Source: Utricularia gibba (taxonomy: Eukaryota > Plantae > Magnoliophyta). Taken from it: a stretch of 64,000 nucleotides of DNA. The notes beneath the pieces were generated by a model that did not search any database, was not told where the DNA came from, and worked only from the letters and a program-made list of their open reading frames with translations. Location: positions 1,612,001-1,676,000 of the forward strand of contig NEEC01000014.1 of assembly GCA_002189035.1 (NCBI GenBank), given 5' to 3'. This document shows positions 951 through 47,146 of the stretch, piece by piece; position 1 is the first letter of the stretch; each line of letters starts with the position of its first letter. Position numbers and translations under genes: made by a program.

Positions 951-2501
951 ATGTCTAATGGAGTTGAACCTTTTTACATCTCTGGTTGGGATCCACTGGT
1001 TTCTCCCAATCAAGATGGAAGTTTTCCTGTAAGCTCTTCGATGGTAACTCAGAGTGCTGCGGCTATTCCACACTTCTCAGCTTTGTTGGAAAGCCAGCAT
1101 ATGGGAATGGGAATGAGAATCCTCAACACTTCAGATATGATGATTGCTGAGGAACACAAACCAGGCTTTTACCACATTTCGTCCCAAAACTTGGAAACAA
1201 AAGGAGGCTCCAATTCTTGCCCAAATTCAGAAAATGGAGGATTACTTGGAGTTTCTCCATCAAATGCAAGGGGCAAAAGAAAGGTAGCAGCTTAGCTTAC
1301 ATCTTTTCTTTTCAGATGAGTTGTAACAGACGAATGATTGCAGGTTGAACAACACCCAAGGATTTCAAGTACGGAGATTGTAGATGATAAGATAAATGAT
1401 TGTGATCCAAATTTTAATTCTAATTATCGAGGCAAGCAGCAGGCAGTTAAACAAGCGAAGGATAACTTGATCAGAGCTGAAAATTCCAAGGAAAATTATG
1501 TTCACGTGAGGGCCAAAAGAGGCCAGGCAACAAACAGCCACAGCCTTGCTGAAAGGGTGTGTAATCCTTCTATTCGTCTGGTCTGATCTTCGCTGTTAGT
1601 TTACTGAACTGAAACTTGTAATTCACAGGTTAGAAGGGAGAAAATCAGTGAGCGGATGAAATTGCTCCAGGACCTTGTTCCAGGATGTAATAAGGTGTGG
1701 GGAATTTCTCAGACTAAAGACATATTTTTGGTTGGGTTGTCTCCCATTAATTCTGCTGTGTGTTCATTTTAAATTTTGAAGATCACTGGCAAAGCTGTGA
1801 TGCTTGATGAGATTATCAACTATGTGCAATCACTGCAGCAACAGGTTGAGGTACGCTGCTGCAATCTCATGACATGTGTAAATCTATTAGTTTTAGTTAT
1901 CTGAAACAATCATGGAAATCTGGGAGGAGATTGACTCACTGTGAATGCAGTTTCTGTCAATGAAGCTAGCTACTGTAAACCCGGAGATCAACATGGATAT
2001 AGATCGGATTTTGCCTAGTGAAGTATGCATATTTGTGAACAAATACAAGATGAAACTTTTTTCTGGTTATTTTAAAAATGTTGCTCATATATTCGTCCTG
2101 CAAAATCTATCTGGTAGATCCTTCATCCGCAAAGTAATGAGGCAAGCATCGTTGGTACGGGCCCAGGATTACGTTACCCTCAATCATTCCAGGGACATCA
2201 CCCTCAAGTTCCCATGAATGGTTTCCCTGTCACAAATCCACCATTTCACCACTTACCGCCGGTAACATAAATACATTGTATATTCAACTTTGTTTGCTTT
2301 CTCTGAAACCATTTTCCTTGTCAGAGCTCATGGAACAGCGAGCTTCAAAGCATTCTTCGCCCAGGATTTGGATCTGATCAATCTATCAACTGTTTGGAAC
2401 CAAGTGGTGAATATTTGAAATCACTCTGGATTGAATTTGTGGTTTAACTGACTGCATTGATTCTTACAAACGTGGTGATGTATTTTACAGGGCCTTCATA
2501 A
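951..2501 (+). CDS. bHLH transcription factor, CIB/BEE subfamily (bHLH74-like); about 8 exons, 5' and 3' ends approximate
   Basis: Spliced reading gives ENYVHVRAKRGQATNSHSLAERV|RREKISERMKLLQDLVPGCNK|ITGKAVMLDEIINYVQSLQQQVE|FLSMKLATVNPE, the hallmark of this subfamily, with GT-AG introns. The N-terminal EPFYISGWDPLV motif resembles bHLH74. Confidence 0.88.
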
Positions 2502-2949
2502 ACGGGGAAGATAAGTAAAGATATTCATGTTGAAGCAGATTGAGGGCTGCAGTCAGTAAATGTTTATAGTGTTTTGCTCTGAATCTAGTGGTTTTATAGG
2601 TTCTGAGTTCCTTAGTCATCGAGTTTTAACTGAAGAAAGGCTTGACAGCTGCTTATATGCAATTTATCTACCAAGCGAACGACAAACACACAAGGGGTGT
2701 CCTCTTGAAAGGAAAACAGGCAAGACTTTACATTATGTCAACTGTATGATTCAGTATGCAGACTTGTAACTAATTACTGCTGGTGTTGTGTGTCAAAAAC
2801 TGCTTGTAACAAGTTTGGCTTGAAAAAGTTGCCATTTTTGAATCAATGTAGCTTTTTCTAGTTGCTGTTGCTTTACAATAAAAGTTCAAGTTGAGTGCAA
2901 TTAGGCTAAAAAGTTTGATTATCAATCCAGGCCAACATGAGCTATGCAA

Positions 2950-4125
2950 TCCGTCCCCACCAACATGGGCTTCGGTTGGAAACAATAATTTGGATATTGG
3001 ATTGTTCTGAGGAACCAGTACTTTCTTTCATGAATTATAAACCATCCATGAAGATGGGCACGAACAGCAATGACCACACCATGCCATCCACCTGATTCTT
3101 CCTAGGCCTTAATCCTCCACTCCAGCTGTCCCACTAAACTCAAAGAAGTTGAGGAAAACTCCATTGACTTGCTGTTCTACTGCGAAATGAAATGCTAAAT
3201 TGATGAGCTGCAGCCCTGTAAGAAGATTCTCACCCTTATTTACAAATTACCAACTACCTTGAACCAGCACCAGTTCATCGTCATCCTATAGCACAAATAC
3301 ATCTGCACGTATCATTATCTTGTTCAAGCATGGTGATATGAACGCACAGGACTAAATCAACATTGCAACTAATGAGGAATCGTAATATCATACTTTAGAT
3401 ATGTGACAACGCACTCTCTAACAATGTTGCAAGATGAGCTGATTAAATCATACCTTGAAGTCAGGGATAGTCCTCTTCAAGAAATCTGGGTTCCGCTGGA
3501 AATCCGCATCAAAAATTGCCACAAACCCATAATCCTTAACATAACTCCAACTCAACACGAATTAGCAGCTGCGTAGATGAGTCATTTGAGTCGTCCAAGA
3601 CTCAATGAGAATTCTCTCTTTTAGCCAATCCAGATTACACCCAGCAGCATTTGATTGTTGATATGTCTAACAACAAATTCATGCAGGACTGAGTCATATG
3701 CAAAAACTAAAGAACTCCATGGGTTCTCCACATTTTCAACTTTTACAATAGATATGCCGAAGCGATGAGTGAAGTTCCCCTCCTTCTCATTACACATGGG
3801 AATCGGAACCGATACCATTGGGAAGACATATGCATCTCCGTCTCCGGCTTCAAGATAAATGTAGTCAATTTTAGGGATTATTCCCGAGTTTTATACAGAA
3901 GCAACCGAGACAAAGGAATAGCCTATACAAGATCCGAACGAAGACACAGCAATAGAAACCCTCTGATGCAGTCATAGAGCCGCGGTATCACGGCCGGGTT
4001 TCACATCAACGAGATTTTCATGGAGTTCCTACGCCCGGCAACCACATGCCGACAAAGCACGGCGGCCAGGGACAAAAATGCGGCTGCAATAGAGGTGCGG
4101 CACTTTCTGGGCTTTCAACTGCATA
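2950..4125 (-). pseudogene. CSLC: Cellulose synthase-like C (xyloglucan backbone synthase, CSLC12-like) pseudogene
   Basis: Recognisable fragments include [112 protein letters not shown] and RIKA*EESGGW...IAVRAHLHGW. In-frame stops lie at 3247-3249 and 3102-3104, with several frameshifts and large internal deletions. Confidence 0.92.
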
Positions 4126-5856
4126 GCGGTGTTGTTTGGCCCAGGGCCAGATGTTAAAAATAATAAATTAATAGATTTTTCTAAACTCGAATAAAATTTT
4201 TATTTAATGATTTTTACAGAAATTCATTCATTAGGTAAATTTTTTTAAACCCATATAAAATTTATATTTAATAGTATATCATTAAAACGTCACTATTTAA
4301 ATATATTTTTTATTAATTTAAACAATTATAAATCATCTATCAAACACGTCATCATAAATAAATAATTATTTCATGGTTTATCTAAATCATATTAATTTTT
4401 TATAAGGTTAGGAAATACAATATCAGGTTGAAAAACTCTATTGCATCCCCTATACGGTGACTTAGATAATAATTTTCGAACAAATAATCCCACATCAAAA
4501 AATAAAAATAGAATAATTAATTATATAAAAAAATATTAATCATTAATAATTAATTGAGTTTAATGTATGCCCACACACATCGGTTTCCACTATATTTCGT
4601 ACACCGCTCGCGCCTCGAAGGCAGGCGGTGATGCGGCGGAGCGGTGGAGTGGAGTGGACTGGAAGCCCTCCGGAATCGGTTGGCTGGACGACAAGCGTGA
4701 ACCAGCTTTGCATTTCAGTCGCCTGCCTGATCTTCTTATATTTATGCAGCAAGATCCTGGTTTTATCTCCATACGAAGCACTGTTAAATTGAGGGTTACC
4801 GGTGTCCTGTCAAGGTGCGCCGGCGTTTTGGGTGGAAGCTTGAGAAGGGTAATCAGCAGCTGCAGCAGAGGATAATGCTACAATCAAATATCCCATACTT
4901 AAGGCATGTACAAGTGTATGTGGTTTGGAGATGGTCATCTGGAGCTGGATCAAAATGAAGTGAAGATGAAGAAACCTGATGGTGATGAAGAACAAGTGGA
5001 GTCACACTGCTGGTGACGTGTGGAGAAAGCGTCTCTTGGTGTTCTTTACGTGAAAAAGGAGCTGAGATGACTACAGAAATTGTCCACCTGGTTGAGTCCC
5101 CTTCCAAACAAAGACCTGTGAAGCTGATCTCATACCATTCTCCAAAGGCCTACGCAATTTTTTGGCCCACCCCTCGGAATGTACATTCCATCACTTTACA
5201 GTAACTGAGAGTTCCACTGAAGCAATCAATATTAAGAAGCAATGAAAGCATGATCATGTGACCTGGTGACAAAAATGAGTTGTTTAATTTACAGCTGCTT
5301 TGAGTTGTAGGAGGAACAAGAGTCAACAGAGATTGGATAAAGGTTTGGACAAAAGATTTGGTGATGTCCACCCCATGGCATTGCTCTCTGGCCACAGCCT
5401 CATGTTTAAACAAAAAAAGGTAGCATAAACAAACCACCACCACTTTCAACATCTGACAGACTGCACCGCCTTCTGACAAAAATGTCGACTTGCACTCTCT
5501 CTGCCTGAGAAACGTATTTTATTCCTATACATCCATCATCTCCGTACGTGTTCTTCGATGCTTTGATGCAAAAACATTGATTCAAAGTATACAATGAGCT
5601 ATAGTATCATTTGATTGGTCGATTTTAGCATCAATCGTTGAAGGAAAAAAATGAAGGAATCATGAATCGTGATTAAAGCAGCAATCAAAGAACCCCCTCG
5701 AACACTGAGCCACAACAAAAGAGAGACCTGCAAATGTTGGGAGTACAACACGAGAAATTAAGCTGTTAAAGCTGAATAGCACACAATGCATCTTAGTTAT
5801 GGTTTGAATTGAAGGAAGCCATGGGAACTGAGGCGTGCTATCAGAATGAGGGTGAA

Positions 5857-33572: not shown

Positions 33573-34458
33573 ATGATTCAGACGGTTAACCCACGAACTG
33601 CGGCCGAGATCATGTCTCGGTACCGCCCAATCGCCCCAAGCCGGAGCAGCCGCCGGCGCCGGGAGGGGAGGCTGATGGGGGATCACATGCAAATCTCCCT
33701 ATCTGCGGAACGTGTGGCCGCATCTTCAGGCTCGCCCCACCCGGACACGGAAGAGGACGCGCACCGCCGCATTCTCCTCTGCCAAGAGACACCAGAATCA
33801 TAGGGCGGCGAATGAGAATGGGACTTGCAGTGGGAATGCGATCTCTCTTGTTCCTTTCCTGTTAGACGACTCCTGTAAGGTTGCTGTTGCTCCTGCCACT
33901 GAGGAATTGGATTTCCTAGAGCTGCTACAGAAGCCCCTGAAGCAGCCTGTCCCCATCTCACCTCGCCCGGTTCGGCCGGTTGGCTCAACCATCATCATCG
34001 CCAACATCGTCTCCGAGGGCCATCTCCTCGCCCTGACGATGGAAAAGGAAGCAATCCACGAGGTGGAGGCCATGGTGGAGGCAGAGCATGTACCTGCAAT
34101 CATATCCGATGCAAACAACAAGGTAAGAATGGTGAATTCAGCCTACAGGGAGATGATTGGCCAGCCAGAATGCGGGTGGCTCGACTGCGCCTCCATGGTC
34201 CCTGGCGACACATGCAGCAGCAGGAGAAGGATCGGTGGTGGGGTTTCTCTTCGTTTTACGGATTCCCAACATTTGCACATTGCGGGTATGCATGGATTTC
34301 GCTGTCAGGTGAAGATCGAGTGGGAGGAGAGTAATGGGAAGAAGACGAAGAAGAGCGTCGCAGCTTCTTGCACGGCTGATAGAATAGACTGTCGGGCAAA
34401 GAGTTACCACTTCTTGTGGAGGTTTCAGATCATGCACACGCCGGATTCAGACAACTAA
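33573..34458 (+). CDS. ABA-induced transcription repressor (AITR/DIG-like), intronless, with two apparent -1 frameshifts
   Basis: The pieces MIQTVNPRTAAEIMSRYRPIAP, KPEQPP, KSPYLRNVWPHLQARPTRTRKR, PAIISDANNKVRMVNSAYREMIGQPECGWLD and DYHFLWRF-like C-terminus (SYHFLWRF) lie in three frames. The shifts map to C4 (33634-33637) and a G run (about 33677-33681). Confidence 0.82.
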
Positions 34459-37200: not shown

Positions 37201-37698
37201 ATGGCACTTGAAGCTCTGAGCTCGCCAACCTCTGCCGCGCCGCCGCCGCCGCTTTCTTCGGGGAGGAGGAGCAAGCGCCAGCGGAGTGACGAAGCCACGG
37301 AGGAGGAGTACTTGGCTCTCTGCTTGATCATGCTGGCATCCTCCTCCCCCAACATCCCACCCTGTAAACTGCCTCTGTCTTCAGGGGAGGCGATGCTTTA
37401 CAAGTGCTCTGTTTGTAGCAAGTCCTTCTCTTCGTACCAGGCCTTGGGAGGGCATAAAACCAGTCACCGGAGGATCACCACCGAGGACAAAATCTCGGGG
37501 ACGACAGTCATCAAGACCCACCAGTGCTCTGTCTGCCACAAGAGCTTCCCGACTGGACAAGCACTCGGAGGTCACAAGCGCTGCCACTATGACGGCGGCG
37601 CGTGCGCGGTGGGGCCACACCGCCAATTTGACTTGAATCTCCCAGCGTTGCCGGAAGATCCACCGGAAAGCCCACCCACAGCCAAGAACTTATTTTGA
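37201..37698 (+). CDS. C2H2 zinc-finger repressor, ZAT10/STZ/AZF-like, intronless
   Basis: MALEAL, the L-box [13 protein letters not shown], two QALGGH fingers and the EAR motif FDLNLP are present. Confidence 0.92.
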
Positions 37699-39163
37699 TT
37701 ATTATTAGACATGGAATATGGAAATTCAGGGTGCTGAGTAATTAGGCACTAGCAGATCCTTCTTGATGATGTAAATATCACAAGTAGAAGAATTCGTTTT
37801 GGCATCCTTCACTTCGTGTCCACGCTAACCAAGAAAAGCAAAGTACACATTCACTAATTAACTCTTGTAATGAATTCACATCAAAACTCGTAGAAAGAAT
37901 GGATGATGGCATGCAGTACAATGAGCTTTTTACATTTCAGATAGAAGCACATCATCCCTCAATGAGAAAAAAAATGTTATCGGCATGCAAAGTGGGGCGG
38001 CCCAATGATTGTTGTTGTGTGGATACCATACATGTGAGTGGAATCGGAAGACGAAGTGAGGATTGGATTGACTCATCATCATCATCATCTCATCTGCTAC
38101 TCCGGCGACTCCTGGCTTTAGATTTATGTGGATTAAATTACTCCTACATCGCAACATGGGGTTGCTTCTTTATCCCACCCTCATCGTCTAGTGACGATTG
38201 CCCAACTTGGAAAGTGGGCACCGCCGCCTAATGCCCACCTCGAGTCAGTACAACAGAAGAAACGACATCAGAAACAGACAAAAAAACGGTGGTCAAGAGG
38301 TGAGTTCTGTACTTGAACTTTTATCACCGCCATTAGTGACTTGGGTTAACCATTAGGTATCTCCCAATTTGGACTCGCCAAACTACTTTTGAATTCCGGT
38401 CGACCGGGGCTGAGAGTTGTGTCTGAGATTTGATCACGGCCAGTACTAGCTAGCAGCTATTTCCCATTTTGGAAACTCCAAATTTACTTTTGAATTCCGG
38501 TCGGGCCGGGCCGGTTGTTCCAACTATGGCCCACAAACCAAATCGCGCATCGGGGTGAATGTTCGGCGTGTGAATTATGAAACCACAAATCGATCGAAAT
38601 TGATTAGGGTTTCTGATTTTAGGTTTAGGTTTTCGATTTTCCAAATCTGTACTCATTGATGATGAATGGCAAATCAATCAGCTGAACAGTCGATTAATGG
38701 AATGATTGATTTTCAAATTTTTGGATGAAAGCTGAATAACCTGTCGTCATCTTTGCCTGGTGATATCCGGTGGATGGCCCTGTGTTGACTTCTACGTAGG
38801 TGGTGTCGAGGGCATGCGAAGAGTAGCGCCCAGGCTTGATCCGTGAATCAGCCATGGAAGAAAGATGAGGATTCTTTGCTCAAATTCGCAGGTATCCTTT
38901 TCTTCTGGTAATAAATACATACCTCTCCTACCGCTATCAATTAGGTGCAGGGATGCCGTCATCAAGGACCATCATGCTCCCCGTATAATAATTCGTAGGC
39001 TTATTGTCTCTTGCGTGTCATTTGTAATTATGTTGTAGCTCTTCTCCATCTGTTGTTGTCTTTCTTGGATTGCCTTTCTTTATGCTTTCCGTCGGCTTCT
39101 CCTGACAATCCTTCTTTTCATCATTTGTGGAACTGTTGATTATTGTCTCCGATCGCACAAGAA

Positions 39164-40668
39164 ATGATGGAGATTATTCAAGAACCAACTTTTACTGCTT
39201 TTCTAGTTCTTGCTCTGTTTTATCTTATTTCGAAGATCTTCACTTCCGCTGTTGCTAGCTCTAATTCTTATCGTCAGTCTGCTGACTATCCTCTTTATGA
39301 AGGAGGGGCTGTACGAATAACTGCTTTGGATAAGGGGTTAACAGTAAGGAAGGCTGATCACCCAGGAAAAGTTTTATTTATTGGCGATGATGTGATCAAT
39401 AGGGTTGATTTTCATATAGGCTCTGAAAGTTCTGGGCTTTTCAAGGATGATTGTAATACCTCTACTGATAATTTTTTTCATGAATCTAGTGAAAGAGTAT
39501 GTGAATTTGGAGAAAATGAGCGTAATACTTCCTCTGGGGAGTTTTGTTCTGGTGTTTGCGAAGCTGTAGATCGTTGGAGAAGTACCTCTGCTGCGGAGAT
39601 TGTGGAAGAGTCTGATGAGTGTGTCCATGAACTCGGGGATGCTAAGTTTAATGAAGTACTAGCAGAACAAGAAATACCAGCGGCGGGGTGCAATGAAACT
39701 GTGGGAGGAGTTGCTGCTGATGTAGATGGGGCAGCAAATATCGATCATGATGAACGCAAAAGGGCGGATTATCAGAATGTAGGAGACGTGCGTATTTGCG
39801 AAGTTGTAGCAGAAGCAGAAGGGAGCGACCCGACAACTTTTAATGAAAATGATGATTGGGAGGGCATTGAGAGGAGTGAGTTGGAGAAAGTGTTTGCTGC
39901 GGCTGTTAATTATGTGGAGTTGGGATTCAAGGGAAGGGTGGGTGCTGATGAAAAGATGGAGAAATTAGGTGGCGATGTACAGATGGAGTTATATGGATTG
40001 CATAAAGTTGCAGTAGAAGGCCCCTGCCATGAGCCTCAACCCATGGCTTTCAAGCTTTCAGCTCGTGCAAAATGGTATTCATAAAGTTCTTTTCTATTGA
40101 TTCTTTCCAGTCAATTACCTGAAAACTTTCCAACCCTTCGGATGCTGTAGAAAAACACCTTCCTGAACTAGATTCTTTATAAGTTTTTGCACTGGTTCTG
40201 CGACTTAAATTAATCCTAAGGCAGCAAAAAGCCGTTGTGTGATAAGCTGCCAGGGTGTAGTTTGATTGCTAGCTATATAACAGGGTTTAAAGCTGCTACC
40301 TATGTGTGTGATGGAGAGCAATGGTTCACTTGTGCAAGGAATGCGTGGAATAAGCTGGGAAGGTTAAGCCGGGAGAAGGCAATGGAGAAGTACGTCAGAG
40401 TTCTCTCAGAGAGAATTCCTCGGTGGAGCGACGATTATCATGTCGTAAGATTTATATCGTGTTAGCATCAACTGTTAGTCCTTAAGCTCCCCTTTAATTC
40501 AGGAGATTATGTTTTAGGATGATGATACCCCATATTCCGAACCACAAGTTCACGAAGACAGAAGGTTGGTTGGCTTAAAGCCCCTTGTCTGCTTACCTTC
40601 ACTAATCCCTGATCATAAGAAAGGTAGCAACCTAATCGCATGGTTTACAGGAAGTCGGAGGCGATTGA
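39164..40668 (+). CDS. ACBP3: Class III acyl-CoA-binding protein (ACBP3-like)
   Basis: An N-terminal hydrophobic anchor and acidic linker lead to DDWEGIERSELEKVF...QMELYGLHKVAVEGPCHEPQPMAFKLSARAKW|NAWNKLGRLSREKAMEKYV. The last two short exons are inferred from splice sites. Confidence 0.88.
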
Positions 40669-41298: not shown

Positions 41299-43142
41299 TC
41301 ACTCCCTGTAGATTCTCCTCAAAACTACATTGTTGGCATCTGCAACCCTGGACCTATTTGCTCCCATCGTGACCGGATTTCTGATCCGCTCTTCCGGTGG
41401 CGGCAAGTCCCGGGTTTCTGCAGAACCAGAACGCAGCTCCGCCGGCGGAATGAAACAGTCCACTGACAGCCCTGGAACGTTGAATGCTACTTCCTCAATT
41501 GTCCATGACTCTTCCATTCTTGTCTTCGTGTGGCTCATTGCATCCTCACCGAACCGAAAAAGGGTGACCACCGATCTGCCCGAGTGTGCTATCATGATCC
41601 CATCAACGGCTCTGTAGTCATGGATGAAGGAGTTGATGGTCGTTTCCCAATACACCGCATCTCCACCATTGTTCTGGATTCGGGTCAAATGGGAATCTTC
41701 TAGATGCACAAGAAGTCCTGTTCTCTGGCTGAAGTATCCAAACAAAACGTGGCGTATGATCTCCGCAGGCCCTTCACTTCTAGCTCTGAGTGTGTGTGGA
41801 TCGGCACACAGTTTCAACACAAAACAATCTTCTCCGTTGATTCTTTTCTCTCCTGTGCATCTTGCATTGATGAACATGTTTGCTGTTGTTCTCGGATCAA
41901 GACCCTGAAAATACATCAATATGCATCAGTTCAGACAACGTTCGGCGCTGCTGATTGTGCAGGAAAACTATGAAAGTCCTTGCCTGAAGTGCACGACGAA
42001 GAGGTCTCACAGGCCCTTTTGCTGTATGAGCTCCAAGCCAAGGAGTATGCCGCCACACCAGTTTCCCATTGCAACCAGCATGGATCTTGCTGCCCCCCAG
42101 AGCCAGTTCCACGTACCACATATCATGATTCATTTGCCACAGCACGAATCCACCCGATTCAGCAGCTCTGGTTAGGTTCTTGCCTTTGATAACCTTGCTC
42201 GCATTTTCGATATCAGATGCAGATAACTTAACCTTCCCCATTGCATAGGCATTTTGCACTGAATTATGAAGCATCTGGCCACCTGAGGCTGCCAGATATT
42301 GCTGTAGTATGTAGAGAGCAGAGGAAGTTTCCTGCGTAGTAGCCCAAAGCATCAGTGTTTCAAACGTTGGAGGAGACTAGTCAAGGACCACCATGGGCCA
42401 AAACCACATGAACATTAAAGTGATGAATAAGCGCAAAATAATCCACCAACCAAGAAATGTGACAACCAGTCACCATCTTCATCATTTTGTCTTGCATGTA
42501 AACCCAAACAGTTTATATCTTTCGAAAGCTCAGGTTTACGGGGAAAAAAACTAAGCATTTCAACAAATACAGGGATCTACTCATGACGGCGAAAGAAGAA
42601 AAGCAATGAATGTGACAAATATTGCAACTTTACACACACAAATAAACACCAGTAACTCAATCCTTTCATCTCGTTCAACAGATGAAAACACAAAAAAAGG
42701 CGAGGTTACCGAGGAAACAGAGAGAGAGAGAACTGACAATGGGGGTCTCCTTGATGGAGAGGTGAGGCAGACGGTGGTGGTGGCTAACGTGCACCGGCGC
42801 CAATGGTGCGCCGAGGACGCCGAGCAGCAGCCTCAGATCAGACCGCGAGTAACCCGGCCCGACAGCCGAAACGGGTGTACGGCAAAGCCAGTTCGCCCAC
42901 CAATCGCTCTTCGGGTCACGCGAACCGGACCGGCTCGGATCCGGACCCTCCCTCAATGGCGACAGCGTCTCAGTCCCCGTTCTAGCAAATAACGCCTCCG
43001 GCGGCCCCACACTCTTCCTCCGCCGTGGCCGCGACCCAGAACGCGACGGTGACTCACTCCTGCCCCTCCTGGACCTCGACGGCGATAACCCCCTAACCAC
43101 CTCCTCCTTCAGGGAGGCAAAGAAACCCTGCTTCCGCTCCAT
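41299..43142 (-). CDS. DUF620-family protein (3 exons)
   Basis: MERKQGFFASLKEEVVRGLSPSRSR, SDLRLLLGVLGAPLAPV, ETSSALYILQQY, GGFVLWQM and CFVLKLCADP...YWETTINS...CFIPP are present. Confidence 0.92.
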
Positions 43143-43670
43143 GGAGCACTACCAATTAAGCGGCTCCTCCAAATGGGTGGCCTCGTGGCTGAGCCGAAGG
43201 GGGGCGGAGATAAGAAAGAGAAGAAGAAGAATAATGCAGGAAGACAAAAGCAAGGCCAGTGAGCATCATGTCCTGTCGCTACCCACCGAATAACATAACC
43301 TCCCCGTTCACATCACTCTAAGCACACACAAACTGCGCTTATTGCGCCCAAATTGTATGTTACCCAAATTAGCCTTCCTTCAATCCTCGCGCGTATCACG
43401 CCCCCACCCCCCCACGTGACCTGAAATCCTCACGTGGGTGACCCCCCGAGTCAAAGTCAGCCATCCCCAAGGGAGGGATGAATGTGGACGCATTTTCATT
43501 TTTTTTCTTTTTAATGGAAAAAGATTATTAATCACTTCACTTAATGCCGGGGGGTTTCAACTTCCAAGACTTTATGTACCACATCTCATGACTTTTCGAC
43601 TTTTTTGCTATTAAAAAGTATTTTTTTATTTTCCACCGGTTCGAGGTCGGTGATGCTTCAAACCGGTCTA

Positions 43671-43692
43671 CTCTCTCTCTCTCTCTCTCTCT
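43671..43692. repeat. (CT)11 microsatellite immediately after the NRAMP stop codon
   Basis: Perfect CT repeat. Confidence 0.92.
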
Positions 43693-43703
43693 GAGACATT
43701 GAA

Positions 43704-45539
43704 TCAATTAAATGCCAAGTTTGTCCGAAGGTGGGAGAAACCAACTTGGTTTCTCCGACCACGGAGGATCAAATACAAGATGAATGCCACGTAGGCGCTG
43801 CCGCCGAGGAAGACAAAGAATCTTAACAGGGATCTGTCTACTTTGGCAACGAAGAAATCCACGAGGACGTATCCATTCACGAATATCACCACCGCAGCCA
43901 CGAGCCAGGAGATTCTCTGCTTGAGCAACGGGGGGATTCTGTGAGAATCGGAATGGGGAGGTAAAAAAGAAGGGTCTTTCGTTACCTGTAATGTGGCTGT
44001 GATGGTGAAGCTTCCCATGATGCGCTCCTCTGAGACGAAGTGGAGAAGAGGGATGATGGCGAAGGGGATTTGCATAGCCTGAAGGACATTTAGCCACTCG
44101 TTGATGACATCGATAAGTGATTCTGAGCGTTTGAACAGCACGGCGACGATGATGGTGGGCAAAATGGCGCAGCTTCTGGTGATGAGTGATCGGAGTAGTG
44201 GGCTGATGGGAAGATGGAGGAATCCAGTCATGATGAATTGGCCGGCGTAAGTGCCAGAGATCGTGCTGCTCTGCCCTGCCGCGAGAAGCCCGATTCCCCA
44301 AACGTAGACGAGGCCGCCCCCGAATCGGCGTTGTAGAAACTCGCCAGCGTTGAGGAGGCCGATGCTGTCGGCTTCCGGGGATCCGTAGAAGCCCCTGGCG
44401 AAGACCGTCATCACGAACAGGTTTATCAGGAAGGAGATTGAGACGGCGACCCATGACTCGATTGTCAAGTAATTCAACGCTTCCTGGATCAGGCTGCGAC
44501 GGCTCCGGTCGACCCGCTGCGGGACTAAGGCGGAGTAGAGGAAAACGTTGTACGGAGTTATCACGCAGCCTACGATACCCACGGCTTGTTGAATTGTCGT
44601 CGAACTGAGCTTCGGTACAACAAGCCCTGCGAAGCAAAGATCCGATCAACAGCGCATCCTCTTCAGTTACAAACAACCATCAAACAACAAAGCTGAAGTT
44701 CATGTTGGGCGAGTTCAAATCTATTAGAATCTTTAAAAGTAAATTGCTGCTCACTCAATTGACCCACCGTCTATAAGCTGAGCGATGCTCGGCTCAACGT
44801 CTATGAACAACCAGGCGAAAGAGAGCGCCATCATGGAAATAAGAAGGCCGAAGAAGGCTTCCAGCATTTTTACACCGTAGTTATCATCGAGAAGCAAGAA
44901 GATGAAGCTGGAAATGGAAGGGGGCGCCGATCTTAGTCATTTTGCGGGCAAACTGTAATGATTTTATATAAAAAGGGGGTGTTCTAACCAATCGGAAGCA
45001 GTGACGAGGACACCTGCCCAAAGGGGGAAAACTCCTTTTGTCAAAATTCTGATGGCAATGGCGCTACCGATGACCTCCTGAATATCAGCTCCGATCAAAG
45101 CGATCTCCGCCATGATCCACAGCATGATCCTTGACCAAAAAGGGTACTCGTCTCTGCAAACCTCAGCTAAATGACGGCCGGTGGCCACACCGAGTCTCAT
45201 GGAAAGGAGCTGGATGAGAAGGCCCATCAACGTCGTCCATAGTAGCAGCCAGAGCAACGAATATCCAGCGATCGCGCCGGATTGCAGATCGCCTTCCAAG
45301 TTCCCTGGATCAAGAAACGCTACGCTCATCAGAAACCCTGGCCCGGAGAACCTCCACAGCTTCCTCCACGAGAAAGGCGCCGGAGATTCAGGCCCTGCGC
45401 CCTCCTCGATCTCCATAATGCTGGACCATCGCTCAGCATCGGAGTGCAATAACGGGTCGGGATCGTGCGCCGTCCTCGGCGACGGCGAACGACAAAAGCT
45501 GGCATTGGAGATGTCGTCTACCGGAGAAGAGGAGGTCAT
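43704..45539 (-). CDS. NRAMP: NRAMP metal transporter of the AtNRAMP2/3/4 clade with an atypical TM6 motif (4 exons)
   Basis: [83 protein letters not shown] and [15 protein letters not shown] are present. The reading frame is intact with canonical GT-AG introns. First in-frame ATG at 45539. Confidence 0.93.
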
Positions 45540-46798
45540 CTCAGAGTCTTCATCGAACGAATTCTCGTCAACGGCTCGCAATCCCTTTTCCAGAAAAAGG
45601 ATGGTGATGTGGTACGGTTGGTAGTCAAAGACCGGAAAACTTTTCCATATTCAGAAGGTGAGATTGACAAATGTCGACTCCATTTTCAACGACTACAACC
45701 AAAATATCAATTAACCCCATGACATCAACATATGTGATTTATAAAAATTAAAAAAATTCTGAAATTTAAATAATTATATTAATGTTGGTAATATATACAT
45801 AATGATTTAAACTCGATTTAATACATTATAAAAAGAATTAAATTCAAAATTAAGAATAATTCGAATGATGAATTGAACACGTTTTTAAAACAATGATTCT
45901 ATTGATTATGACTAAGGTATAATTATAATTGATGGGGCACTAAATCGGTTGGGACAAATTGGCTGGCAAAAAGATTTCAAAATTATTCTTACAAAGAGCT
46001 ACAAAGAGTATAGATTGATAATTGTCAGAATTGGATAATGGTAATCATTTTGTACAGTTTGAAAAATAGTAGAATCAAATAAATATTAGAGCAGTCGACG
46101 ATTATCCGAATAATATGACTATCAGGTACAGAAAATTACCGACACCTATAAAATTTGATTGGATCGACTTTTCATATAAATATAAGTAAGTTTGAAAAAG
46201 AAATTATTGATCTCTCTATATTTGTACTTATATCATTCACCTCTTTTTCGTTAATGAAATCCATTTTTTCAGAAAGTTTCAATAGTTTAATGGTTTTTCC
46301 GTTTGACCATTTTCACGTAAATAACTTGTATATTTTTATTCATGCACCCATATAATACACCCGGAACCCAAAACTCTTAAATAAGACTCAATGAATTCGA
46401 TTTTATCTATAATCCGAAATCGGTTTATATCGAGAGACTGGTTTTCGACCACAACAATAATATTAATATGTTAATCTTCATGTTTTATAGACATATTTAA
46501 AGTAATAAAAAATAAGATGTATAATTATTTTATAAATGATATGTGTACATAAAAATATTAAATGAAGAGCCGAAACTTGCTGCGCACACTATCAAAAGAA
46601 TTTTTTTTTATAATTATAAGTTCATTATTTTGTTTTGTATGATGTGCTTGAATGCAGCCGTGAAGACATTCATTCACGGTGACGGCAGCAACGGAAAGGT
46701 ACTGGCTACGATACCTCGTTCGTCCTCGAATAAATGAAGCAATCCTTTCCTCGATCAAAATCACTTCTTTCCCTGCTGGGCTTCCCGTTTCCGGCCGT

Positions 46799-47146
46799 AT
46801 GGAGGAAGAGTTTCAAGAATCCGAAATCGTGTTCCCCGAGGACGAGGAAGGAGAAGGAAGCTCGGAATCAGATTCAAGCACCTCTTGGAAGCCGCGAAAT
46901 GCGGCGGGCGAGGAGAGGAGGTGTTCGCTTCCGATGAAAATACCGGAGGGGAGAAGAGTGCGTGTGGTGGAGGAGGAATGGGAGGAGGACGGCGAAGAGA
47001 TGGTTCCCCCGCACGTGATCGTGGCGCGGCGGCTCGCCGGGAAAGTGATGGCGTTGTCTATCTGCACCGGGAACGGCATCAAGGGGCGGTATCTGAGCCA
47101 GCTACGGAATCTGGTATTCCGGTTGACGGGATTCATCGAAACCTGA
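46799..47146 (+). CDS. Senescence regulator S40 (DUF584) family protein
   Basis: MEEEFQESEIVF, SLPMKIP, EMVPPHVIVARR and C-terminal GRYLSQLRNLVFRLTGFIET are present. Confidence 0.88.
   Translation: MEEEFQESEIVFPEDEEGEGSSESDSSTSWKPRNAAGEERRCSLPMKIPEGRRVRVVEEEWEEDGEEMVPPHVIVARRLAGKVMALSICTGNGIKGRYLSQLRNLVFRLTGFIET

Follow-up and report, generated by a model that had tools for sequence, protein, structure and literature searches.

The window analyzed here, a 64,000-nucleotide stretch of the Utricularia gibba genome (contig NEEC01000014.1, positions 1,612,001 to 1,676,000), in whose own coordinates all positions below are given, carries on its minus strand at 45539-43704 a gene of the NRAMP metal transporter family. 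An earlier interpretation made from the letters alone (the sequence-only reading) had likened its sixth transmembrane helix (TM6; other helices likewise) to that of the rice Al3+ transporter NRAT1. The gene model derived from the sequence comprises four exons, separated by three introns that are all GT..AG, and encodes 514 amino acids with no internal stop. Pfam Nramp (PF01566) matches both halves of the product above the curated cut-off (E 1.2e-52 over profile positions 150-356 and E 1.9e-33 over positions 2-100), and its PDB matches are exclusively NRAMPs. An RNA contig of 1061 nt from one public run (X1) omits precisely 43917-43985, 44627-44767 and 44908-44988 and has 0 letters differing from the window DNA, TM6 included, so the gene is transcribed and spliced as modeled and its odd codons are not assembly errors; a second contig from the same run extends the cover within exon 1. 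In runs X2-X4 transcripts of the gene were not seen, which does not prove their absence there, and no second NRAMP gene was found within the 64-kb window. The sequence-only reading had described an intact, normally spliced gene retaining TM1 DPGN and TM3 D..E, and gene model and RNA contig bear this out. The parts of the gene are the following.

43704-45539, minus strand: whole coding region of the NRAMP gene (sequence gene model, Pfam on both halves, spliced RNA contig)
44989-45539, minus strand: exon 1, N-terminus and TM1-TM3 (model, with RNA contigs covering 44989-45420; the start codon and 5' end are from the model only, outside the RNA cover)
45447-45464, minus strand: N-terminal acidic dileucine D26-P-D-P-L-L31, pattern [D/E]xxxL[L/I] (motif scan; putative sorting function)
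45300-45311, minus strand: TM1 metal-binding D77-P-G-N80, the canonical DPGN and not the NRAT DPSN (sequence, alignment)
45075-45086, minus strand: TM3 D152-I-Q-E155, proton-pathway Asp and Glu kept (alignment to 8ONT and DraNramp)
44768-44907, minus strand: exon 2, TM4-TM5, including a Lentibulariaceae-specific E-to-DD change (model and RNA contig)
43986-44626, minus strand: exon 3, TM6-TM10 (model and RNA contig)
44532-44570, minus strand: TM6 motif (sequence, identical RNA, alignment to SiNRAT and human)
44076-44090, minus strand: TM10 N410-V-L-Q-A414 (sequence and clade alignment)
43704-43916, minus strand: exon 4, TM11-TM12, C-terminus and stop (model; RNA contig covers from 43756)
43706-43704, minus strand: stop codon TGA (gene model)

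Read along the minus strand from 44570 to 44532, the TM6 codons are ggc tgc gtg ata act ccg tac aac gtt ttc ctc tac tcc, which translate to G250 C V I T254 P Y256 N V F L Y261 S262; they are exactly the codons that the sequence-only reading had reported within 44520-44585, and the RNA is identical. T254 (44558-44556) stands in place of the metal-binding Met, and Y256 (44552-44550) and Y261 (44537-44535) stand in place of the two His of TM6b. The TM6 methionine is the textbook reason why NRAMPs pick Mn and Fe (and Cd) from a large excess of Ca and Mg, and proton coupling depends centrally on the two histidines that follow it. TM6 was aligned against human IMPHNMYLHS and against SiNRAT GAIITPYNLFLHS; the latter shows that the sequence-only reading had given the NRAT helix correctly and, therefore, that the Met-to-Thr and first His-to-Tyr changes are convergent. 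The canonical signature consists of DxxN in helix 1 and A/CxxM in helix 6; here DPGN is present and helix 6 reads CVIT (CxxT), and the protein so departs from it. Retained are the metal-coordinating Asp and Asn, the GQSST transport motif and, despite Tyr at both TM6b His positions, the TM3 proton-pathway residues E145, D152 and E155. Ala151, just before D152, lies at the place of the extra Asp140 of SiNRAT, and V73, four residues before D77, where canonical copies have Ile. In TM10, N410 retains the Asn at the position of DraNramp Q378, and A414 replaces the Ser of canonical copies; numbered along an ungapped helix from Asn/Q378, A414 would correspond to DraNramp position 382, beside L381. The E-to-DD change between TM3 and TM4, listed together with TM6 by the sequence-only reading, is real but, in the clade described below, is shared with Genlisea alone: other members keep LENYGVRKLE, and ALVPQR is likewise specific to Lentibulariaceae.

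The best database match of the window protein is from Genlisea aurea (73% identity in the C-terminal part, 76-77% over the whole protein), followed at about 60% identity by Lamiales proteins labeled Nramp2, Nramp3 or Nramp3.2, a ranking that agrees with the origin of the window in Lentibulariaceae. Met is absent in 32 of the 120 best matches. The exact TM6 reading of the window occurs, in this first list of 120, in twelve core Lamiales species (Andrographis, Handroanthus, Perilla, two Salvia, Henckelia, Primulina, Orobanche, Striga, Phtheirospermum, Paulownia and Phlomoides) and overall in 14 Lamiales proteins, other asterids having ITPHNVFLYS. More closely, ITPHNV(F/Y)LYS is found in Oleaceae, Rubiaceae, Solanaceae, Cornus, Nyssa and Ilex, and ITPHNVFLHS in Camellia. 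Further searches also returned Erythranthe, Ipomoea, a second Cinchona copy and Rhododendron, and cluster members come also from Capsicum, Solanum, Withania, Lycium, Coffea, Olea, Fraxinus, Abeliophyllum and five Sesamum species. These proteins, which we refer to as the T-clade, number more than 60 sequences with intact reading frames from seven asterid orders. The positions replaced in them are invariant in 38/38 canonical plant copies, in 5/5 outgroups and in about 98% of 150 eukaryotic NRAMP representatives; MPHN is present in 122 of these 150 and Met is missing in just three (a Rhododendron fragment, a spider protein and one probable pattern-search mis-hit), and so the motif is anything but a chance variant. 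No T-type protein from outside the asterids was found among the best 120 matches of the window query, or among the best 120 of a search with a profile built from twelve clade members, mostly early-branching or non-Lamiales, that scored the 8000 candidates sharing most words; rosid NRAMP2 proteins ranked beneath clade members in the profile search. Absence of the clade outside asterids is likely but not proven, and among the matches listed no T-type was seen for Asterales or Apiales.

Some individual sequences stand apart from this distribution or extend it. The NRAMP2 of the spider Caerostris extrusa (P0249) reads ITPHNLYLHS, an independent Met-to-Thr departure, and a clade member from Rhododendron molle (P0205) has the first His-to-Tyr change (TPYN..LHS), separate from that of Lamiales. 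In Solanaceae every NRAMP2-labeled protein recovered (P0055 cluster, P0049) is of the Thr type; in tomato, surveys have counted just two group II genes, and canonical NRAMP2 may have been lost in this family with the T-type as its sole successor. Clade members go under the database labels 'NRAMP2', 'NRAMP3.2' or 'NRAMP5', some of those from Capsicum being annotated 'Nramp5', and tobacco accessions named 'NtNRAMP2/NtomNRAMP2' adjoin those of T-type proteins recovered here.

In a maximum-likelihood tree of 74 proteins, rooted with charophyte, choanoflagellate, mollusc, diplonemid and foraminiferan NRAMPs, all 31 sequences bearing Thr, Ser or Ala in place of Met form one clade (ultrafast bootstrap 100, Shimodaira-Hasegawa-like approximate likelihood ratio test 98), nested in a 51-row asterid NRAMP2 clade (100/99) that lies itself inside eudicot NRAMP2. 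Within the T-clade the branching order tracks the species tree, with Ericales and Cornales diverging first, Ilex next and thereafter Gentianales, Solanales, Boraginales and Lamiales; Oleaceae branch outside core Lamiales. The tree rows hold no NRAT sequence, and the comparison with NRAT was made through alignments to SiNRAT (8ONT) and through bit scores, in which the window protein reaches 132 and 101 with SiNRAT versus 183 and 172-178 with human NRAMPs. NRAT or group I plant sequences were absent from the best 150 matches of the Andrographis orthologue, which were animal, protist and algal NRAMPs. Plant NRAMP genes of group II are known to have four exons versus 13 in group I, and the four exons found here match the group II structure. 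The window gene belongs to the NRAMP2 branch of the NRAMP2/3/4 group. Tree, bit scores and exon count thus uphold its earlier placement in that group and not with NRAT, and they also change the picture in two respects: what had been taken for a lineage-specific event in this genome is instead the most derived state of an old asterid-wide clade, and a gene proposed to be vacuolar like NRAMP3/4 is by ancestry a copy of NRAMP2, which in Arabidopsis resides in the trans-Golgi network.

A canonical MPH paralogue, about which the sequence-only reading had asked, lies beside the T copy in Genlisea, Cinchona and Ilex, and none lies within the window. At these three loci the order is head-to-tail, with the canonical MPHN copy upstream and the T copy downstream: in Genlisea (locus L001) the canonical copy spans 1157-3034 and the T copy 3212-4979, about 200 bp downstream; in Cinchona one strand carries the canonical copy, a P450 gene and then two T copies; and in Ilex the T copy comes after a canonical one. 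In Rhododendron the locus tags of the copies differ by two. Because T copies still lie just downstream of a canonical copy in three genera, tandem duplication is the most likely origin, and a single tandem duplication of NRAMP2 early in asterid history is the simplest reading; in the U. gibba genome, either the two copies have moved apart or this locus has lost the canonical one. The canonical Genlisea copy was rebuilt by scoring splice combinations against the Henckelia protein, its C-terminal exon being approximate, since the annotated end (3007) gave no valid gene model. This rebuilt copy has its introns at the same places as the window gene. The Genlisea T copy has two introns only, the exon 2/3 intron of the window gene being missing from it and present in the canonical copy beside it, which points to intron loss in one lineage. 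In Ilex paraguariensis (locus L003) the MPHN-encoding stretch occurs twice (2808, 4343) as identical DNA in the region of the canonical gene, and the T copy is split over two gene calls (188 and 296 amino acids); these oddities reflect either faulty assembly or annotation or a duplication at the locus.

The window gene is under purifying selection. Its ratio of nonsynonymous to synonymous divergence (dN/dS) against the Genlisea orthologue is 0.09-0.13, at a dS of 1.2-1.6 that is close to saturation, and the neutral evolution (dN/dS near 1) against which the sequence-only reading had wished the gene to be checked is thus not what is found. The Thr codon is ACT in the window, ACG in Genlisea, ACC in Cinchona and ACA in Ilex and Camellia; all four Thr codons are in use, and the third position has therefore drifted while the amino acid was held. 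The sequence-only reading was mistaken in stating that Met-to-Thr needs two base substitutions: one suffices, from ATG to ACG, the codon of Genlisea, and the ACT of the window reflects a further synonymous change. T copies evolve faster than their canonical counterparts. In Tajima relative-rate tests, where each T copy was paired with a canonical paralogue from its own species or genus, the T copies had accumulated 1.4-3.4 times more unique changes, significantly so in 8/9 pairs; mean path lengths from the shared node are 0.88 for T copies versus 0.35 for canonical copies, and the Lentibulariaceae copies have the longest paths in the tree (about 1.76).

The states of the pocket, read from seven key alignment columns across the T-clade and written here as the residues at the Met, first His and second His positions, fall into a series. 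Camellia has T-H-H with the ancestral TM10 Ser, the residue present in 38/38 canonical plant copies and 5/5 outgroups; Cornales, Ilex, Rubiaceae, Solanaceae, Convolvulaceae and Oleaceae have T-H-Y with TM10 Gly; and core Lamiales, including Genlisea and the window gene (T254/Y256/Y261/A414), have T-Y-Y with TM10 Ala. This stepwise succession of TM6 states, each with its matching TM10 residue, is seen in more than 60 sequences, with Sesamum (Ser/Tyr/His/Ala) and Lithospermum (Ala/His/His/Ala) as exceptions. Elsewhere in the protein, the clade shares Ile-to-Val two positions ahead of the TM1 Phe-Leu-Asp, Leu292Val, Lys331Arg, Ala377Ser and Leu461Val. The rebuilding of the pocket thus began with replacement of the metal-binding Met by Thr, continued, in Cornales, Ilex, Gentianales, Solanales and Oleaceae, with that of the second TM6b His by Tyr together with TM10 Ser-to-Gly, and ended, in core Lamiales, with that of the MPH His by Tyr together with TM10 Gly-to-Ala.

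We consider it probable, at roughly 0.6, that the window gene is an expressed and maintained member of the NRAMP2 T-clade whose product carries Mn2+ with looser selectivity than canonical NRAMP2, is likely uncoupled from protons and acts at an endomembrane. A T-clade protein would, by analogy, still bring Mn2+ (perhaps also Fe2+) into the cytosol, either from a lumen or from the outside: AtNRAMP2 transports Mn2+ at the trans-Golgi network, and EcoDMT M235A keeps Mn2+ transport and gains that of Ca2+. Lacking the sulfur ligand, it may no longer favor soft metals such as Cd2+ and may exclude Ca2+ and Mg2+ less well; in DraNramp, loss of M230 lowers Cd2+ transport more than Mn2+ transport, and a mutational scan published in 2026 found M230A/S/T to be the best Mg2+-importing single mutants, with Mn2+ import kept, H232 to be the next determinant, and H232Y to co-occur with L381/C382 changes. 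By analogy, the natural TM6/TM10 pairing parallels the H232Y and L381/C382 pairing of that scan. DraNramp H232 mutants and H237Q show drastically reduced H+ transport, with metal transport kept in the H232 mutants, and the Lamiales members, in which both TM6b His are gone, are probably not proton-coupled; the uncoupled form would be a uniporter that draws on the membrane potential and the metal gradient. Conservation of the N-terminal acidic dileucine suggests that the protein, like its NRAMP2 ancestor, resides at an endomembrane (trans-Golgi network or vacuole): such a motif sorts NRAMP3/4 to the vacuole, and it occupies the same N-terminal position in most clade members as in canonical NRAMP2 proteins, which makes the endomembrane site plausible but unproven. 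The window protein is thus like NRAMP2 in its four exons, N-terminal dileucine, DPGN, TM3 D..E and GQSST, and unlike it in Met-to-Thr, both TM6b His-to-Tyr changes, TM10 Ser-to-Ala, TM1 Ile-to-Val and an approximately 2.5-fold protein divergence. It is changed at the same three TM6 positions as the DraNramp and EcoDMT variants, with the neighboring TM10 position co-varying; unlike those variants, which carry one or a few mutations in bacterial proteins about 30% identical, the T-clade changes are natural, have been fixed for tens of millions of years and are accompanied by further clade-specific substitutions. Of the altered selectivity put forward in the sequence-only reading, the part concerning hard cations (Mg2+, Ca2+) and possible proton uncoupling fits the published mutational data, and the part concerning Al3+ is weak.

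Several points count against this assignment. Its functional statements draw by analogy on bacterial or grass proteins of 30-40% identity, and the localization is read from a short motif alone. TM3 E145, D152 and E155 are all kept, so that some proton coupling could persist, and Tyr is not a neutral filler and could in part take over the role of His. EcoDMT without its Met gained no Mg2+ transport, and the gain of hard cations is therefore context-dependent. The link between TM6 and TM10 stems from one or two evolutionary events only and is beyond statistical test, the faster evolution of T copies could reflect relaxed constraint instead of a new function, and expression was found in just one of the four RNA runs. 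More tentatively, and with the odds in our view somewhat against it, the asterid subfamily may represent a natural three-step path, from T-H-H/Ser to T-Y-Y/Ala, along which a proton-coupled, transition-metal-selective NRAMP2 became a proton-independent carrier of hard cations with a distinct physiological job. If so, that job could be, for instance, the joint release of Mn2+ and Ca2+/Mg2+ out of the vacuole or trans-Golgi network, or Mn transport poor in Cd, and the Lamiales/Lentibulariaceae form in the window would be the end point of the path.

A convergent transporter of the trivalent cation Al3+ like rice NRAT1 or SiNRAT, as the sequence-only reading proposed, now appears improbable. In TM6 the window protein does equal SiNRAT at the two most conspicuous positions, with Thr for Met and Tyr for the first His (ITPYN; CVITPYN versus AIITPYN), its DxxN-CxxT comes close to the NRAT signature DxxN-AxxT defined in 2022, the Thr matters in that SiNRAT T241V abolishes Al3+ binding, and Al accumulators such as Camellia and Rhododendron contain clade members. 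The features of NRATs given in the SiNRAT paper, however, are DPSN, AxxT, Asp140 and Ser403. The NRAT-unique Ser68 of DPSN is Gly here, and SiNRAT S68A loses Al3+ binding and competition by Ga3+ while it keeps Mn2+ transport and competition by Ca2+/Mg2+; the extra TM3 Asp (D140), which is conserved and supplies negative charge, is Ala (GADIQE versus SDDIPE); and TM10 keeps Asn410, a residue shared with human NRAMP2 and canonical plant copies, where SiNRAT has Ser403, the alignment of Asn410 to 8ONT residue 403 being inferred from coordinates. SiNRAT also retains the second His (LHS versus LYS in the window), and the NRATs, a Poaceae clade, belong to the 13-exon group I, unlike the four-exon group II gene of the window. 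In all, the protein shows two of the five NRAT sequence hallmarks and lies outside the NRAT clade, and its pocket would in that respect resemble the SiNRAT S68A mutant, additionally lacking the extra Asp. SiNRAT itself is uncoupled and poorly selective and still carries Mn2+, the behavior predicted here for the window gene. The T-clade, moreover, spans asterids without an obvious link to acid soil, including an aquatic and wetland carnivorous family, and the tea and hydrangea NRAMPs for which Al induction has been reported fall in the other plant group: the tea 'NRAT1 homologues' are of the group I (AtNRAMP1/OsNRAMP4) branch, and the hydrangea NRAMP was named solely by its BLAST match to NRAT1.

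About equally doubtful is a dedicated Mg2+ or Ca2+ transporter without transition metals, a eukaryotic counterpart of the NRMTs. In its favor, M230T and H232 changes open DraNramp to Mg2+, H232Y with TM10 changes is among the Mg2+-importing variants, and the window protein, like EleNRMT, whose transport is uncoupled, has neither the Met ligand nor either TM6b His (Trp and Asn stand there in EleNRMT). The NRMTs, however, are a distant prokaryotic clade with the signature DxxG-TxxA/T, with which DPGN and CVIT agree at the last position alone, the TM1 Asn being kept and the first TM6 position being Cys; the polar TM3/TM9 pathway, hydrophobic in NRMTs, is kept here with its TM3 acids; and conversion of the EcoDMT site to NRMT residues gave no Mg2+ transport, Mn2+ transport persisting. 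We find it unlikely, if slightly less so, that the gene encodes an ordinary proton-coupled Mn/Fe NRAMP2 in which the TM6 changes are near-neutral, in a redundant duplicate with an altered expression pattern. The Mn2+ and Fe2+ transport of M230 mutants, the retention of D77, N80 and the TM3 acidic residues, and a faster evolution that fits relaxed constraint would all agree with it, and in Solanaceae the T-type is apparently the sole NRAMP2-type gene, suggesting that the NRAMP2 role is covered. Against it stand the near-invariance of the replaced positions in canonical and eukaryotic copies given above, the conservation of the new residues throughout the age of the clade alongside synonymous turnover at the Thr codon, the ordering of the changes in steps with matching TM10 changes, and the rank of these same positions as top determinants of selectivity and coupling in mutational scans. 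That the protein transports nothing, being a decaying duplicate or a regulatory or sensor subunit, we regard as very improbable: its branch is the longest in the tree (1.76 versus a canonical mean of 0.35) and its RNA is confined to the one run, but dN/dS is about 0.1, the reading frame is intact here and in the more than 60 orthologues of seven asterid orders, and the metal-coordinating Asp/Asn and GQSST are kept.

A paper describing the T-clade was not found in a search that reached few subscription journals and is so not proof. Family surveys of tomato, tobacco and tea state MPHN as conserved or leave TM6 unexamined; the two structural papers that define NRAT and NRMT place the canonical signature in 'most transporters of plant origin', with NRATs as the sole plant exception named; and a 2026 review of plant NRAMP evolution leaves the T-clade unmentioned. 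The clade is apparently undescribed, and the statement of the sequence-only reading that no eudicot example was known agrees with the literature searched. To our knowledge, the natural departures from the canonical site known until now were the bacterial NRMTs and the grass NRATs. The T-clade points to a third, arisen independently inside eudicot NRAMP2 and conserved over seven asterid orders that include tomato, potato, pepper, tobacco, coffee, olive, sesame and tea. If the favored reading of the T-clade as looser, probably uncoupled Mn2+ carriers holds, Mn and Cd handling in major crops may depart from the Arabidopsis/rice model, the clade would supply natural NRAMP variants of low Cd preference, and its ordered intermediates would offer a ready series for studying how selectivity and proton coupling co-evolve.

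A few smaller features of the locus are recorded here. Intron 3 (43917-43985) is 69 nt long, in frame and stop-free, so that a bacterial-style list of open reading frames (ORFs) runs through it; its retention would add 23 residues ahead of TM11, and it is removed in the RNA contig. A (GA)n microsatellite at 43665-43700 lies a few bases past the stop codon, in the presumed 3' untranslated region. Beyond the reach of the RNA contigs, the minus strand holds two short ORFs upstream of the start codon, at 45560-45655, reading atg gaa aag ttt tcc ggt ctt tga and atg aag act ctg aga tga, the second of which ends inside the main start codon (45539). When the Genlisea locus and the window were compared in translation, conservation was found only in the NRAMP gene, and the PUF gene present downstream in Ilex and Camellia was not found in the window. 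The downstream neighbor is a DUF620 gene on the minus strand at 41299-42352, perhaps extending to 43142 (two ORF pieces, E 6e-81 and 7e-33), and the upstream neighbor is a gene of the senescence-regulator family at 46679-47146 on the plus strand. Farther left lie ORFs for an ACBP-domain protein (39143-40084), a C2H2 zinc-finger protein (37201-37698) and a DUF7950 protein (33712-34458), and the spacing of genes around the NRAMP locus is very tight, a density in keeping with the small genomes of Lentibulariaceae.

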